From: Salpingoeca rosetta
Taxonomy: Eukaryota > Protista > Choanoflagellata
Assembly (NCBI GenBank): GCA_033442325.1
Contig: JAWQFM010000018.1
Location: 124,001-188,000, forward strand
Length of the DNA: 64,000 nt
Direction: 5' to 3'
Shown in pieces: positions 13,601-25,600 of this stretch. Below the pieces are notes generated by a model that searched no databases, had not been told where the DNA came from, and was given only the letters and a program-made list of their open reading frames with translations. Position 1 is the stretch's first letter. Each line of letters begins with the position of its first letter. The translations under genes and the position numbers were made by a program.

Positions 13601-16600
13601 TGTTGTTGTGGTGGTGGTGGTCGTTGATGTTGAAGTTACTGGCTCCGTACCACTTCCCGTCGTTGATGTTGCCGTGGACGTTGAGGTCGACGAGGACGAT
13701 GTTGACGTCGTCGTCGTCGTTGTCGTCGTGCTCGTTGTCGTAGAAGATGTGGAGGTCGATTCCACTCCACTGCCGGTTGACGTTGACGTTGATGTTGATG
13801 TTGATGTCGAGGAGGAAGAAGACGAGGAGGTTGATGTCGAAGACACTGTAGTCGTCGTCGTCGTCGTCGTCGTCGTCGTCGTCGTCGTCGTTGTTGTTGG
13901 TGTTGTCGTCGTTGTTGTTGTTGTTGTTGTTGTTGTTGTTGTTGTTGTTGTCGTCATCGTCGTCGTCGTCGTTGTTGTTGTTGTCGTCGTCATCGTCGTC
14001 GTCGTCGTCGTCGTCGTCGTTGTTGTTGTTGTTGTTGTTGTTGTTGTTGTTGTTGTTGTTGTTGTTGTCGTCGTCGTGGCGGTGGTGGAAGTCGAAGTGG
14101 GCGGCATTCCACTGCCGGTTGAGGTGGATGTGGACGTCGAAGTCGACGATGATGTTGTCGAAGACGATGACGTTGATGTTGAAGACACAGTGGTGGTGGT
14201 CGAGATTGTTGTGGTTGTGGTTGTGCTGGATGACGAAATGGAAGAGGACGATGATGACGAGGTCGAAGTTGATGAAGACGTTGATGTTGTGGTCGCTGTT
14301 GTCGATGTCGAGGTGGACTCAAAACCACTTCCGGTCGAAGTCGACGTGGAAGAGGAGGATGAAGTCGAGGTCGAACTTGAGGTCGAAGTGGACGTAACCG
14401 AAGTGGTCGTCGTCGTCGTCGTTGTTGAAGTGGACTCCATTCCACTGCTGGTTGATGTTGATGTTGACGTAGACGTCGAACTTGACGGTGTGACTGTCGT
14501 CGTCGTCGTCGTCGTCGTCGTCGTCGTCGTCGTCGTCGTTGTTGTTGTTGTTGTCGTTGTTGTGTCGTCGTCGTCGTCGTCGTCGTCGTCGTCGTTGTTG
14601 TTGTTGTTGTTGTTGTTGTTGTTGTTGTTGTTGTTGTTGTTGTTGTTGTTGTTGTTGTTGTTGTTGTTGTTGTTGTTGTCGTAGTAGTAGTAGTAGTAGT
14701 AGTAGTAGTAGTAGTAGTAGTTGTTGTTGTTGTTGTTGTTGTTGATGTTGTTGTTGTTGTCGTCGTCGTCGTTGCTGCTGTTGTTGTTGTTGAAATGGAC
14801 TCCATGCCACTGCTTGTTGACGTCGAGGTCGACGTTGATGTGGACGTTGAAGTCGAAGTTGATGGTGTGACAGTCGTCGTCGTCGTCGTCGTTGTTGTTG
14901 TTGTTGTTGTTGTAATTGTAGTTGTAGTACTTGTGCTTGTAACCGGCTCTGTCCCACTTCCCGTCGTGGATGTTGAAGTCGAAGTCATTGGTTCAGTCCC
15001 ACTTTCCGTTGTTGTAGTTGTAGCCGTAGTTGTTGTAGTTGTAGTTGTAGGTGTTGTTGTTGGGCTGAGGCTTGTGCTGACTGTGGTTGTGAGTGTCTGG
15101 TTAAGGGCCACTGTTGTGAGCGGATTGTACCCGTCAGCGGCAATGGTGACTGCGCTGTCCTCACCGAACGCAGGAACGGCAGCACTAAACTGACCGACAT
15201 ACGCGTACGGCGACACATCACGGCCGTCCAAGAACATGGATGGGCGCAGGGCAGGGCGGCGTGCGAGGTCAGGCGTGATCTGGATCAGCGACAGACCCGC
15301 AAGCACTGGCGCCTCAGTCTGCACCGCAACCACAGCCGTGTAAACAGACGCGTCCTGGTTCATGCGCAGCAGCACACCGTTCAAGCCTGTGCCTTTGTTG
15401 GCGGTGACGAGCGAGCCCACAGTCACGTTACCAACGAGCGCAACGTCGGGAGCCGCAAAGGCAATGTCGGCGATGAAGATGGTGTCATCAACGCCACCGT
15501 CGCCAGCGCGCGTGCGTGCGTCCACGGACACCTCCAAGGTGCAGCCCATGCTGCACACCGCAGACACCTCGATGCCTGCAATGAGGCGGACAACTCCGAG
15601 ATTGGCCAAGTTGGCGTACAGCACGTCGTGCACGGAGAGCGCCGTGTCCCTGTTGAAGTCCAGTGTGTCAACAACCTCAGGGAACTGGCGAACATACGAC
15701 AGGAACCGCTGCCCGCGTTCAGACTCGAAGGAGATGGTGGACTCCAGCAGGTATGCCAGCGCAAACGCAGCATCGTTCACGTTGAAGGCGCAATCGCCAT
15801 TCACGTCACCCACGACGCGGCTTGTCGATGGGCATGGCACCACCTCCGTGCAGCCACTACCGTCCCCGAGCAGAACAAACTGCGCAGGCGTGCACGTGCT
15901 ACGCCGTGTTCGCACATGCACGGCCGTCTTGGCGCTGGTATCGTGTTCGAGAGCAACAGCAGCAAGGGTGTCTGCGGCGCTTGCACTTGCGTCATCTGTG
16001 TCCACGACAGGCCAGTCAACCTGGCGACGGCGCCTGCCCGTGCCCGTGACCACGTCGACCGAGATGTTGGCGGCTGTGGCGAGGCGCGGCGTTGGCTCGC
16101 CAATCGGGGTACCAACACCATCGCCTTCGCCAAGAGACACCACGCGCACCTGCAGCGGCGACGCACCAAGCGCAACGCCGCGCAGGCGCACCGAGGCCAA
16201 CGCAAGCGACGACGTGCCTTGAACATCCAGCACGCCGCTGAGAACAGCGCGGTTTGTGCGCCGCACCCACGCAAAGGCGCCGCCGGCATACGCGGGCGTG
16301 ATGGCTTCCACATCCACAATCGCGTCATCAAGCAGAAGCTCAAGCTCAAAGCCACCAAACCGCCTGCCCTGCACGTTCACTCGCAGCTGCAGCGAGCGCG
16401 CTTCGCCCACGACCAGGGTGGGCGAGGGGTTGGTGGTGGTTGGGCCCAGATCCACGTCGCCAAGCTCTGGGACGAGGTTCGTGGCAAATGCGTACGATGC
16501 CTGAGCGCTTCCGCTCCCCTGTGCCGTGGTCGCGAGCAAGGTGACGCCACTCGCGCCGCTGTTGCCGAGCAGCACCACTTGTCCCGTCGCGCTGGAGACA

Positions 16601-22600: not shown

Positions 22601-25600
22601 GAGGTGGAGGTGGACGTGGAGGTGGAGGTGGAGGTGGACGTGCTGGTGCTGGTGCTACTGCTGGTGCTGGTGCTGGTGCTACTGCTGGTGCTACTGCTGG
22701 TGCTGGTGCTGGTGCTACTGCTGGTGCTGGTGCTGGTGCTGGTGCTACTGCTGGTGCTGATGCTGGTGCTGGTGCTGGTGCTCGTGGAAGTGGATGACGA
22801 GCTCGATGTCGACGAAGAGGACGACGTACTGGTACTGGTGCTGGTGCTGGTGCTGGTGCTGGTACTTGTGGACGTGCGTGCTTGCATGCACATGCTGTTC
22901 ACCGTTGGCGACAGCAGCGCAGGGACGTCAACGTCTGCGTCGTTCAACACCAGCTGTGCACTTGCACCAGCCGATGTCTCCACAGTCACGTTGAGCGGTG
23001 GCACGGATGTAGAGCAGCAAAGTGGATCAGAGCCCGACAACAACACGCGGCGGTTGACGTCGATGAACGAAGCACTGCCGTCATCCGTCACAATCCACGC
23101 CACAACCTGGGTTGTGAATGGCGCATCCGTCTCTACAATCGCCTCATACACCGCGCCCACATCCTCGCCTGGCGCGAACGTTGCCGCGGCAGAGACAAGC
23201 AAGTGCGTGTCGTCAACCAGCCAGAGTTGCCGCCCCTCAAGCAGGAGCGGCGGACGCACGGATGCCCGTTCCTGCATATCCACGGCAAAGAAGACATAGG
23301 TGTTGGCGGCACTTGTAGCAGGCAGCGCCGGCAGCGGAAGGCTGAGCGACAGCCCGCACTCGTTCTCATCAAAGGATGTTGCGGCTTTGCCAACAAACGG
23401 CAGGAGGCCAAAGTTGATGCGCAGCAAGAGCGAAGAGTCGCGTGCGTCAATCACACCGTTGCGATCAACGTCCATCTCCCGCAGCTGCGCGTCCAGCAGC
23501 ATGGCGCGCGTGCCTTCCTCGTCGAGGGCCAGATCGGCAAGAATGGCCTGCAGGTACGACACATCCTTGATGCTGAACACGCAGTCCGCATTCGTGTCGC
23601 CAAGCACAATCTCGGAGCAGTTGCAAGGCGGGTTACTACACGGTGTCGCCTCCCTGCGTGTACGGCCCGCAGCGGCCGCAGCAGCAGGGGTGGCAGGGGT
23701 GGCAGTGGTGGTGACTGGGGCGGAAACATCGCCAGCATCGCCGCTGGCCAGTCGGCCGGCCACAATCGCGCGCGGTGTGGCGCCGCCAATGTCAGCGCCT
23801 CGCAGCGTCGCTAGCGTCTGCACAACGCCACCAAGGTCCAGTGGCAGCGTGTCATCCAGCACCTCAAACGCAATCACGGCCACCTGTGCACGCGGGCCGG
23901 AGAACGGGTCCGAGATGCCACCAACGGCAACAACCCCTGGCGGGTCGTTGAGCCGCTGCACAAGCTGTCCGGAGAAGTCTGCACCTGCAGTTGCGCTCAC
24001 GGCGCGCAGGGCTGACGGGTTGTATGTCACATGCAGATCAACGAGCGCAGCAGCACGCGCGCCCGTGTTCACCCACACAGGCACAGCCACCGTGGTGCCT
24101 GATTTCACCAGCGGAGGTCCGCACAGCTCGCCGAGGTCCACATCCCCCACAGCCGGCAGTGCGTTGGGCAGAACGTGCACCGTCGTGTTAATAGTTGTCG
24201 CAGACGAGAGGGCGACATGCAGCTGCACAGGCGTCAGACTCGATTGCAGCAGCACAGCGCTGCCGTCCGCTGTCACCTCCACCACATCGGGTGCTGATGA
24301 CGCGAACGCAAACGCGGCCGCGTCCATCGCCAGGTCCTCCGCACCTGCAGCTGTTGTGCCGTCGGCAAAGCCCAGGGCAAACGTTAGCGGCACAGCGGTG
24401 CCTGTCACGCGACAGAGCGGTGTGACGACCACCTCATCGCCGCCGTTGCCGCCGTTGCCGCCATGGTCGAGGCCGGGCTCAACGTTGTTGCCGACCGTCG
24501 CAACATCAATCGTCTCAACTGGGAGTGCGGTGCTGGACACGGACAGCAGCAGCCGCGATGATGTCACCGCTTCGTCGGCGAACGAGGCAAACACGTCCAC
24601 GTCGCCTTGCAAGCCACTGCTCTGCGTCACCACAAACACGCCAGCCTCCAGGACAAGCTCCACGGTGTTGCTGGGGGCGGTGGTGCCACCAACGACGGCG
24701 CGCAGCGTTGTGAACGAGGACGCGGACACGTCAACGGCAGTGCCATCTGTCAGCAGCAGCTGCACAGACACGCGCAGCGACCGATCCGCAGCGAGTGCCT
24801 GCAGCGGGCCAATGTGAACGCGCGATGTTGAAGAAGACGCATCAGGCACAGCGCTGCCGCCTGGGCTGAGCTCGGCGTCCAGCAGCAAGGCGGCGGCACG
24901 GACGAACGTCACGGGCGCGCGCTGCTCCATGTTGTCAAAGTTGGTCAGCGTCACCGCAATCTCGAACGAGCCCGCAGCGGCGTTGCTGGTCGTGGCCAGC
25001 GTGAGCACGTCGTTTCCAGTCAGAAGAACGCTGCCTGCTGGAACCTGCACGTCCACACCAGGCGCAAACGTGGCGTCCTGTTGTGTGCCATCTGCAAAGT
25101 GAAGGATCACACGCACGCGCGTGCGGGTCGGAATGCCCACGTCGCTCGCAGCGGCGGCGTTGCCGCTCACAGCAAGACGTGGCGCGCCCAGCAGCACCTC
25201 CACCTGTGTTGGCACTGCAGGTGTGGTGCGCACGTGCAGCGGGACGGTGCCTGCAACGGCGCCGTCACACAGCGACAGCACAGACACGTTGGCCACGGGG
25301 CCGGACGGCGATGTCAGGCCCTCAACAAGCAGCGTGCTGCCGTCAACGAGGCTCACGACATCCTGGCTCGCGTCGTACAGTTCCGTCACCACGCCCAGCA
25401 CACCAGACAGGTCTGTTGGCTCCGGATCAACCATGCTGCTGCTGGCCGTTGTGTTGGCGTTCTCGCTGGCGATGCCAACAGCGAGGATGTTGACATTCTG
25501 CGGGAAGCGGGTGACGCGGTTGCCGTATGTTGCAGTCGCAAAACGCCGTGTGGGCTCCAGCTCCTCGGGCACAGAGGCAGCAACAGCTGTTGGCGAGGAT

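Follow-up and report, generated by a model that had tools for sequence, protein, structure and literature searches.

A stretch of 64,000 nucleotides from the genome of the choanoflagellate Salpingoeca rosetta (contig JAWQFM010000018.1, positions 124,001 to 188,000; C18:124001-188000 in the genome of 55.4 Mb and 68 contigs that was searched in this study), hereafter termed the window, contains a giant open reading frame (ORF) with two cassettes, blocks A and B, in which a cohesin is connected to a dockerin by a linker carrying basic motifs. We consider it reasonably probable that each of these cassettes constitutes a self-matched cohesin-dockerin clasp in the stalk of a giant adhesion protein of the cadherin type, which is pre-cut by a proprotein convertase. 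This reading is carried by the folds of both domains, by the placement of the basic motifs in the linker and by the covariation of residues across a modelled interface.

Layout and distribution of the cassette

In both blocks, the cohesin and the linker are followed by the dockerin, a conserved tail of about 165 residues and a mucin stretch, all encoded on the minus strand within the same ORF (Table 1). Blocks A (amino acids 3975-4400) and B (amino acids 6538-7005) can be aligned over their full length at an identity of 28%, with their RTRR motifs in register just ahead of a conserved cysteine-rich lead-in and the first calcium loop. A sequence-only reading of the window had described a cohesin, a linker with R-x-R-R and a dockerin with two calcium loops in either block, and all of these elements were found on the minus strand where it had placed them, as were the residues EATPCS, QVDWP and STCTPA following the sites, which it had predicted as new N-termini and which are present as written. 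The tail domain matched no Pfam family, and the fold-search lists for cassette B were filled by cohesin matches. About 20 further cassettes are contained in other giant ORFs of the same genome, as found in a search with blocks A and B, and an exhaustive search through 1.84 billion representative proteins with the cassette profile returned 4281 matches at E <= 1e-3. In this set of representatives, matches to the whole cassette at E <= 1e-30 were obtained for 413 proteins, many of them giant and with two to seven cassettes each.

Some of the relatives show a different context of the cassette. In the shorter proteins P0040, P0042, P0121 and P0147 it is preceded by a complete TMEM132-type module, which comprises a cohesin-like 3rd domain and the 4th to 6th immunoglobulin (Ig) domains. 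The units of these proteins thus hold two cohesin-type domains per dockerin, with the cassette cohesin being the second, downstream of the 3rd domain of TMEM132, and the latter is a candidate for an alternative docking site. In P0133 and P0142, which encompass about 1800-1900 residues, the profile was matched in its cohesin part only, in 11 and 9 tandem copies, respectively. By their repeat pattern these two proteins look like scaffoldins and their source organism may be bacterial.

Table 1. Positions of the giant ORF and its features in the window, and of convertase genes on contigs C1 and C9 of the same genome.
Feature	Position	Strand	Basis
Giant ORF, 7367 codons as listed	13990-36093	minus	ORF listing, Pfam
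Cohesin A, aa ~3981-4121	23731-24153	minus	Pfam Cohesin PF00963; homologous to cohesin B
RTRR, block A site 2, then EATPCS; no site 1 in block A	23653-23664	minus	motif
Dockerin A, Cys-rich lead-in and two calcium loop-helix repeats	23386-23652	minus	Dockerin_1 top match, AlphaFold2 (AF2), Foldseek, profile
Tail domain A, conserved beta-sandwich	22894-23385	minus	alignment with block B and paralogues
Central Ser/Thr mucin stretch, after tail A	19933-22872	minus	sequence
TMEM132-type Ig domains 4th, 5th, 6th, upstream of cassette B	16933-18369	minus	Pfam
Cohesin B, aa ~6543-6684	16042-16467	minus	AF2 model (pLDDT >90), Foldseek, VIA
RRRR, block B site 1, directly after last cohesin strand, then QVDWP	16024-16035	minus	motif, paralogue conservation
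Spacer between block B sites, 37 aa, predicted disordered, unconserved	15913-16023	minus	AF2, alignment
RTRR, block B site 2, then STCTPA	15901-15912	minus	motif, paralogue conservation
Dockerin B, Cys-rich lead-in and two calcium loop-helix repeats	15583-15900	minus	Dockerin_1 top match, AF2
Tail domain B, beta-sandwich	15094-15582	minus	AF2
Second Ser/Thr mucin stretch, after tail B	14572-15072	minus	sequence
Convertase gene	C1:1687127-1690333		subtilase and P domain
Convertase gene	C9:1064265-1067519		subtilase and P domain

Folds of cohesin and dockerin

The cohesin and dockerin folds of the cassette are real and they are bona fide relatives of their prokaryotic counterparts, as had been claimed from the sequence and as is now supported for both domains by matches of profiles and of modelled structures. 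Cohesin A passes the cut-off of the Pfam family Cohesin (PF00963) with 30.5 bits compared to 24.1, as do 16 paralogous cassette cohesins of the genome. The expectation that both blocks would be recognized by this family was thus borne out for block A, whereas cohesin B remains without Pfam match although its modelled fold is that of a cohesin. In the AlphaFold2 (AF2) model of cassette B, which was obtained from an alignment of 123 sequences and which shows an overall predicted local distance difference test (pLDDT) of 86.1 and a predicted template modelling score (pTM) of 0.84, cohesin B adopts a beta-sandwich with pLDDT >90. This sandwich superimposes on the cohesin 2VO8 with a root mean square deviation (rmsd) of 2.5 A over 129 residues (VIA Z 14.0), with all of the about 45 top rows being cohesins, and its top match in Foldseek is 2XDH with a template modelling score (TM) of 0.75. 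Similarly, a profile of 13 paralogous cassettes compared to all sequences of the Protein Data Bank (PDB) returned only cohesins and dockerins.

For the dockerins, Dockerin_1 (PF00404) is the top Pfam match in blocks A and B, and four paralogous cassettes of the genome reach the cut-off of this family with 22.9-33.6 bits. A profile of 123 dockerins detects the Clostridium thermocellum proteins 4FL4_A (E 1.4e-8) and 1OHZ_B (E 2.6e-7) among the PDB sequences with both repeats aligned, and nearly all of the top 30 or so rows are dockerins or dockerin-bearing proteins. When modelled by AF2 (pLDDT 95.2), dockerin A finds exclusively dockerins in its top 31 Foldseek rows, the best of which match with a TM of 0.83-0.87 and an rmsd of 1.9-2.5 A, and in the model of cassette B the dockerin helices are located at residues 235-294. 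Two calcium loops of 12 residues are present in both dockerins of the window; at loop positions 1, 3, 5, 9 and 12, nearly all of the 123 sequences contain Asp or Asn, with the Asp residues at positions 1 and 12 being invariant or nearly so.

A distinctive property of these dockerins concerns position 6 of the first loop, which is a cysteine in 107 of the 123 sequences, almost always accompanied by one or three upstream cysteines. The position is occupied by glycine in another 14, and 12 of these contain no upstream cysteine. The lead-in cysteines that covary with the cysteine of loop 1 are located just after cut site 2 (window positions 15810-15900 and 23590-23652 on the minus strand). Their covariation suggests that the loop-1 cysteine and the odd upstream cysteine probably form a disulfide, which would staple the new N-terminus to the dockerin.

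Convertase motifs in the linker

The motif R-x-[K/R]-R is the consensus sequence of proprotein convertases. It occurs five times in the in-frame part of the giant ORF, with three of the occurrences located in the linkers of the cassettes. In the 13 paralogous cassettes of this genome, which are otherwise only 20-33% identical, the arginine columns of the R-x-R-R preceding the dockerin (site 2) are invariant, and the RRRR directly following the last cohesin strand (site 1) is conserved to at least 90% and missing only in block A. Two additional cassettes of the genome also contain poly-arginine sites. A broader view is provided by 190 cassettes, of which 178 have at least a dibasic pair at site 1 and 172 at site 2. 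The strict R-x-[KR]-R is found at site 1 in 98 and at site 2 in 130 of them, and 144 cassettes contain it in at least one of the two places. The P1' residue is small or polar, mostly Ser, Ala, Gln, Asn, Asp or Glu, and the unconserved spacer that separates the sites has a length of 21 residues in the median. In 131 related giant proteins, the linkers account for 2.3% of the residues but harbor 215 of the 287 motifs, equivalent to a density of 2.38 per 100 amino acids compared to 0.018 elsewhere and thus to an about 130-fold enrichment. In the model of cassette B, the linker is the only part of low confidence (approximately residues 150-210, including RRRR at 150-153 and RTRR at 191-194), and at the RRRR, where the disordered linker starts, the block mean of the pLDDT falls from 84 to 55.

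The R-x-R-R sites are not a product of chance, and they have the form of a convertase substrate in an exposed segment that is predicted to be disordered. The argument of the sequence-only reading, that the equivalent location of the motif in two diverged copies reflects function, has thus gained strength from its invariance in the 13 paralogues and its enrichment in the relatives. Its placement of the sites between cohesin and dockerin is confirmed, but it had overlooked that two sites around a spacer are the norm. In the alignments, the usual design of the family consists of two sites bracketing a variable spacer, with the first site having been lost in block A.

It is conceivable that the linker remains uncut, and that binding of the dockerin to its cohesin in the intact chain would stiffen or shorten the stalk or store hidden length, with the basic motifs serving in the binding of sulfated glycans or as trafficking signal. 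The fold and the modelled interface are indeed independent of cutting and some family members lack basic pairs. However, the motif displays the form expected for convertases, with Arg at P4, a variable P3, Arg or Lys at P2, Arg at P1 and a small or polar P1', and it is found in two fixed places around an unconserved disordered spacer with the described enrichment, a pattern that would not be required for a charge patch, which makes an uncut clasp distinctly unlikely.

The genome contains furin/kexin-type convertases with Peptidase_S8 and P_proprotein domains at two or more loci, one of which also encodes a growth-factor-receptor cysteine-rich region as found in furin, PACE4 and PC5.

Predicted interaction between cohesin and dockerin

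The pTM of the cassette B model, obtained in spite of a disordered tether of about 55 residues, would imply that its three domains are confidently placed relative to each other. The pairing of the two domains was further investigated in a model of the chains expected after cleavage of cassette B (residues 1-153 and 195-468), which yielded an ipSAE interface score of 0.77 (0.68, 0.78 and 0.77 in individual runs), with the best-scoring of three controls at 0.01. The mark used for this score is attained by 51 out of 78 solved complexes and by 2 out of 108 mismatched pairs. At least 87% of the contacts are shared between the runs, with a partner pLDDT of at least 51. In the modelled interface, cohesin residues 43-46, 68-73, 80-86 and 115-125 face dockerin residues 228-246 and 284-297, which, as assigned by DSSP in the model, correspond to strands 3, 5, 6 and 8 of the cohesin and to loop 1, helix 1 and the helix following loop 2 of the dockerin. 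Dockerin B is thus predicted to reside on the canonical 8-3-6-5 face of the cohesin in the type I mode. This canonical mode is the one found in 1OHZ.

The modelled interface is mirrored in the covariation of residues. Among 181 non-redundant cassettes, the strongest inter-domain pair by mutual information (MI) with average product correction (MI-APC) consists of cohesin residue 82 and dockerin residue 295, which are in contact in the model. Interface residues on both sides are connected by 13 of the 25 highest-ranking inter-domain MI pairs, compared to 1.3 that would be expected (p about 5e-11), and 2000 draws of entropy-matched control sets from outside of the interface contained 0.84 such pairs on average and never more than 5. 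The 82/295 pair is compensating in size, with Gly-Phe found in 110, Ser-Leu/Val in 13 and Val-Val/Ala in 13 cases, and with G-F present in block A and S-L in block B. In 12 phylogenetically independent contrasts, based on a tree built without columns 82 and 295, the dockerin residue follows the cohesin residue in about 7.4 and shows the opposite behavior in none (median sign-test p 0.016). Since the covariation is found within the cassette, it identifies the dockerin in cis as the evolutionary partner. The structure-prediction check of the pairing that had been proposed for these domains, here carried out for cassette B, thus predicts canonical binding that sets itself apart from the controls and that is backed by covariation. 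The idea of a private interface code for each cassette is only partly true, as G-F and A-R are repeated across the cassettes of many multi-cassette proteins.

Cleavage could also lead to release, where the distal cadherin part would be shed and the contact between cohesin and dockerin would be weak or transient, serving, for example, as a folding aid in the endoplasmic reticulum (ER). Ectodomain release is a common outcome of convertase processing, but the calcium ligands and the interface have been retained and covary in hundreds of copies, which is difficult to reconcile with a contact that has no function in the mature protein, and we therefore regard this scenario as improbable.

Cis clasp or exchange in trans

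A cut-and-exchange mechanism, where cleaved dockerins would bind to another cassette or to other molecules to build chains or a cellulosome-like matrix, was at the heart of the sequence-only reading. It would be in line with the behavior of bacterial cohesin-dockerin systems, which act in trans, and with the finding that many multi-cassette proteins use identical interface residues (G-F, A-R) in more than one of their cassettes. The inventory of the genome points in a different direction. All Pfam matches to cohesins (16) and dockerins (4) are located in a cassette or beside their partner in one, and a scan of the genome with Pfam and the family profile found neither an enzyme-borne dockerin, nor an orphan cohesin or dockerin, nor a scaffoldin with multiple cohesins. 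For two loci that initially appeared to contain only a dockerin, scoring with the family profile revealed a full cassette in each.

With its cohesins and dockerins present in a 1:1 ratio in cis on one polypeptide, the cassette system is not a cellulosome, and the proposal of a cellulosome-like matrix is not supported. Equally, the swapping of partners and the polymerization of chains are not what is suggested by interface residues that covary within the cassette and thus point to a self-matched clasp. Cohesin-dockerin pairs are known for their very slow dissociation, which makes swapping after folding in cis unlikely. Together, the 1:1 inventory in cis and the covariation within the cassette favor the self-matched cut-and-clasp over an exchange matrix, and we consider cut and exchange to be unlikely.

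Context of the giant ORF

The giant ORF contains cadherin domains in 10 stretches as assigned by Pfam, besides EGF domains, the 4th, 5th and 6th TMEM132-type Ig domains and Cohesin. With cadherin repeats, a cohesin and TMEM132-type Ig domains on one ORF, it fits the coherin/TMEM132-like class. The window contains two runs of N, one of 520 bases (48252-48771) and one of 230 bases (29579-29808), which is located inside the giant ORF. Since the length of the latter is not a multiple of three, a single frame of 7367 codons across this gap is unproven.

The frame slips within a poly-threonine repeat at about 14440-14570 (minus strand), and the last approximately 190 codons are out of frame, with the end reading as poly-Gln/Arg. 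The cause of this slip is either an intron or an error in the length of the repeat. Coding appears to continue in another frame, in ORFs at 11435-14440, 9782-11245, 8765-9778 and 7705-8721 (minus strand), whose translations read as further mucin, a domain of about 180 residues, furin-like cysteine-rich repeats and finally LamG/EGF-like exons, with the latter being separated by (TG)n tracts.

A module of about 110 residues is located right after the central mucin stretch (19594-19932, minus strand), and it contains a RARR at 19783-19794. Its sequence raises the suspicion of a SEA-like domain. The genome contains four paralogues, and the five copies share an invariant Arg-Arg followed by Ala or Glu, which is part of R-x-R-R in two and of x-S-R-R in three of them. 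The module may be a third joint of the giant protein that is cut by a convertase, and it recalls the S1 loop of Notch.

Discussion

Our analysis suggests a mechanism in which the giant protein would be made and folded as a single chain. In the calcium-rich environment of the secretory pathway and ER, each dockerin would fold back over a linker of 30-90 residues onto the 8-3-6-5 face of the upstream cohesin, and a furin/kexin-type convertase would subsequently cut the exposed linker, at two sites with release of the spacer in block B and most members of the family, and at one site in block A. The mature protein would then consist of two or three polypeptides arranged end to end and held solely by non-covalent, calcium-dependent cohesin-dockerin joints. 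The first fragment would comprise the cadherin/EGF part and end with cohesin A, the second would start with dockerin A, include the mucin as well as the TMEM132-like Ig domains and end with cohesin B, and the third would contain dockerin B and the region that follows. The joints could serve as break points sensitive to force or calcium, akin to a mechanical fuse, or as points of shedding. We infer the cutting of the chain, the persistence of the halves in a complex and the purpose of the joint from the described features, and the extracellular types of its domains suggest the secretory routing of the protein.

Several observations weigh against this interpretation. Both binding and cleavage are predictions, and the score of the modelled complex may partly reflect a memory of solved cohesin-dockerin complexes, to which the identity is only about 12-15%. 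Both dockerins of the window score below the Dockerin_1 cut-off of 22.9 bits (17.5 for A and 15.5 for B), which qualifies the expected detection by this family, although it is the top match in either case. Block A contains a single site and 7 of the 190 cassettes are devoid of any dibasic pair, and cutting is thus not obligatory for the fold. The relatives were collected with a profile that included the arginine columns, which might have caused a slight bias towards cassettes that bear the sites. A signal peptide and a membrane anchor of the gene containing the giant ORF were not located. Finally, only 11 RNA-seq reads map to a region of 4.8 kb (15079-19900; three runs with the same species label), which is too few to indicate more than trace transcription, and expression in the sampled runs is very low. 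In all 11 reads the first mate is on the plus strand, which fits a minus-strand transcript in common stranded libraries.

The crossing of an assembly gap, the out-of-frame end and the very thin support by RNA might suggest that the ORF does not represent a real gene or that its motifs are accidental. An artefact of this kind is effectively refuted by the 413 relatives of the whole cassette, the confident models and the strong enrichment of the motif.

The clasp shares features with known systems but also differs from them in important aspects. With type I cohesin-dockerin pairs of bacteria such as C. thermocellum (1OHZ, 2CCL, 4FL4), it has both folds and the duplicated calcium loop-helix in common, and the modelled contact is the same, with dockerin helices 1 and 3 placed on the 8-3-6-5 sheet of the cohesin. 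In contrast to these pairs, both domains reside in a 1:1 ratio on one eukaryotic polypeptide with a cleavable linker and there are neither glycoside hydrolases nor a scaffoldin. The dockerin of the cassette is further distinguished by an insertion of 10-20 residues between its repeats, by the cysteine that replaces the bacterial glycine at position 6 of loop 1, and by the conserved beta-sandwich that follows it. Cohesin and dockerin on one chain are also found in the Archaeoglobus fulgidus protein with the cohesin 2XDH and in small bacterial proteins termed 'Cohesin/Dockerin type I', which are non-cellulosomal. These proteins differ from the cassette in their prokaryotic origin, lack convertase sites and do not belong to adhesion receptors. 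The archaeal cohesin-dockerin protein is known to self-associate. The nearest neighbors in the Atlas include clusters with both Pfam families, although with scores <0.9, which make them a lead only.

The logic of the proposed joint, in which a protein is folded as one chain, cut in an exposed loop within the secretory pathway and kept together non-covalently so that the joint can react to force or calcium, is the same as in Notch S1, in the SEA domains of mucins and in the GAIN domains of adhesion G protein-coupled receptors. Notch S1 is cut by furin. Unlike these systems, the joint would be formed by two separate domains of bacterial type instead of one split domain, and it would usually involve two cuts and the removal of a spacer. 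In this respect it resembles proinsulin, where two dibasic sites surround a poorly conserved connecting peptide, although this remains an analogy since the chains of insulin are held by disulfides, compared to the proposed non-covalent and calcium-dependent hold in the cassette. By the same analogy, the spacer would, like the C-peptide, ensure the correct pairing of the flanking parts prior to its removal.

Coherins have been described as combining cadherin repeats with a cohesin (Nichols 2012 as cited in Sanchez-Pulido and Ponting, 2017, PMC6030884). The giant protein resembles the coherins and TMEM132 proteins covered in this paper in the combination of cadherin and cohesin and in the TMEM132-type Ig domains, which are found in the same order. 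In the same paper the cohesin is treated on its own, with no partner, and neither a dockerin in coherins nor a furin site is named (PMC6030884). Our search, which did not extend to Peer 2009 and Nichols 2012, found no published description of this design, in which a dockerin is combined with choanoflagellate cadherins or convertases.

A more far-reaching proposal, which we consider unlikely, would have the joints act as regulated points of breaking and remaking, where force or a drop in calcium would free the distal cadherin and mucin parts and the freed ends of dockerin or cohesin could dock again on other molecules. If true, this would amount to a reconfigurable extracellular scaffold in the style of a cellulosome in a close relative of animals, built with a module that is likely related to prokaryotic cohesin-dockerin pairs and of which animal TMEM132 proteins may keep a remnant.

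Cohesin-dockerin interactions are among the strongest known non-covalent couplings between proteins and, to our knowledge, the pairs have been studied almost only as connectors acting in trans in bacterial cellulosomes. Here, the pair forms a 1:1 module in cis whose tether contains conserved convertase sites, and hundreds of giant adhesion proteins from eukaryotes carry such a module. The diversity of these cassettes offers natural and possibly orthogonal cohesin-dockerin pairs for protein engineering, although orthogonality itself is not claimed. The cassette provides the 'orphan' cohesin of coherins with a partner and it raises the question of what is bound by the cohesin-like domain of TMEM132 proteins, which have been linked to deafness and panic disorder. 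If the proposed clasp holds true, it would be a means, not described before, of equipping a cell-surface protein with a non-covalent joint that is cut in advance, in parallel to Notch S1, SEA and GAIN but with an origin independent of them.

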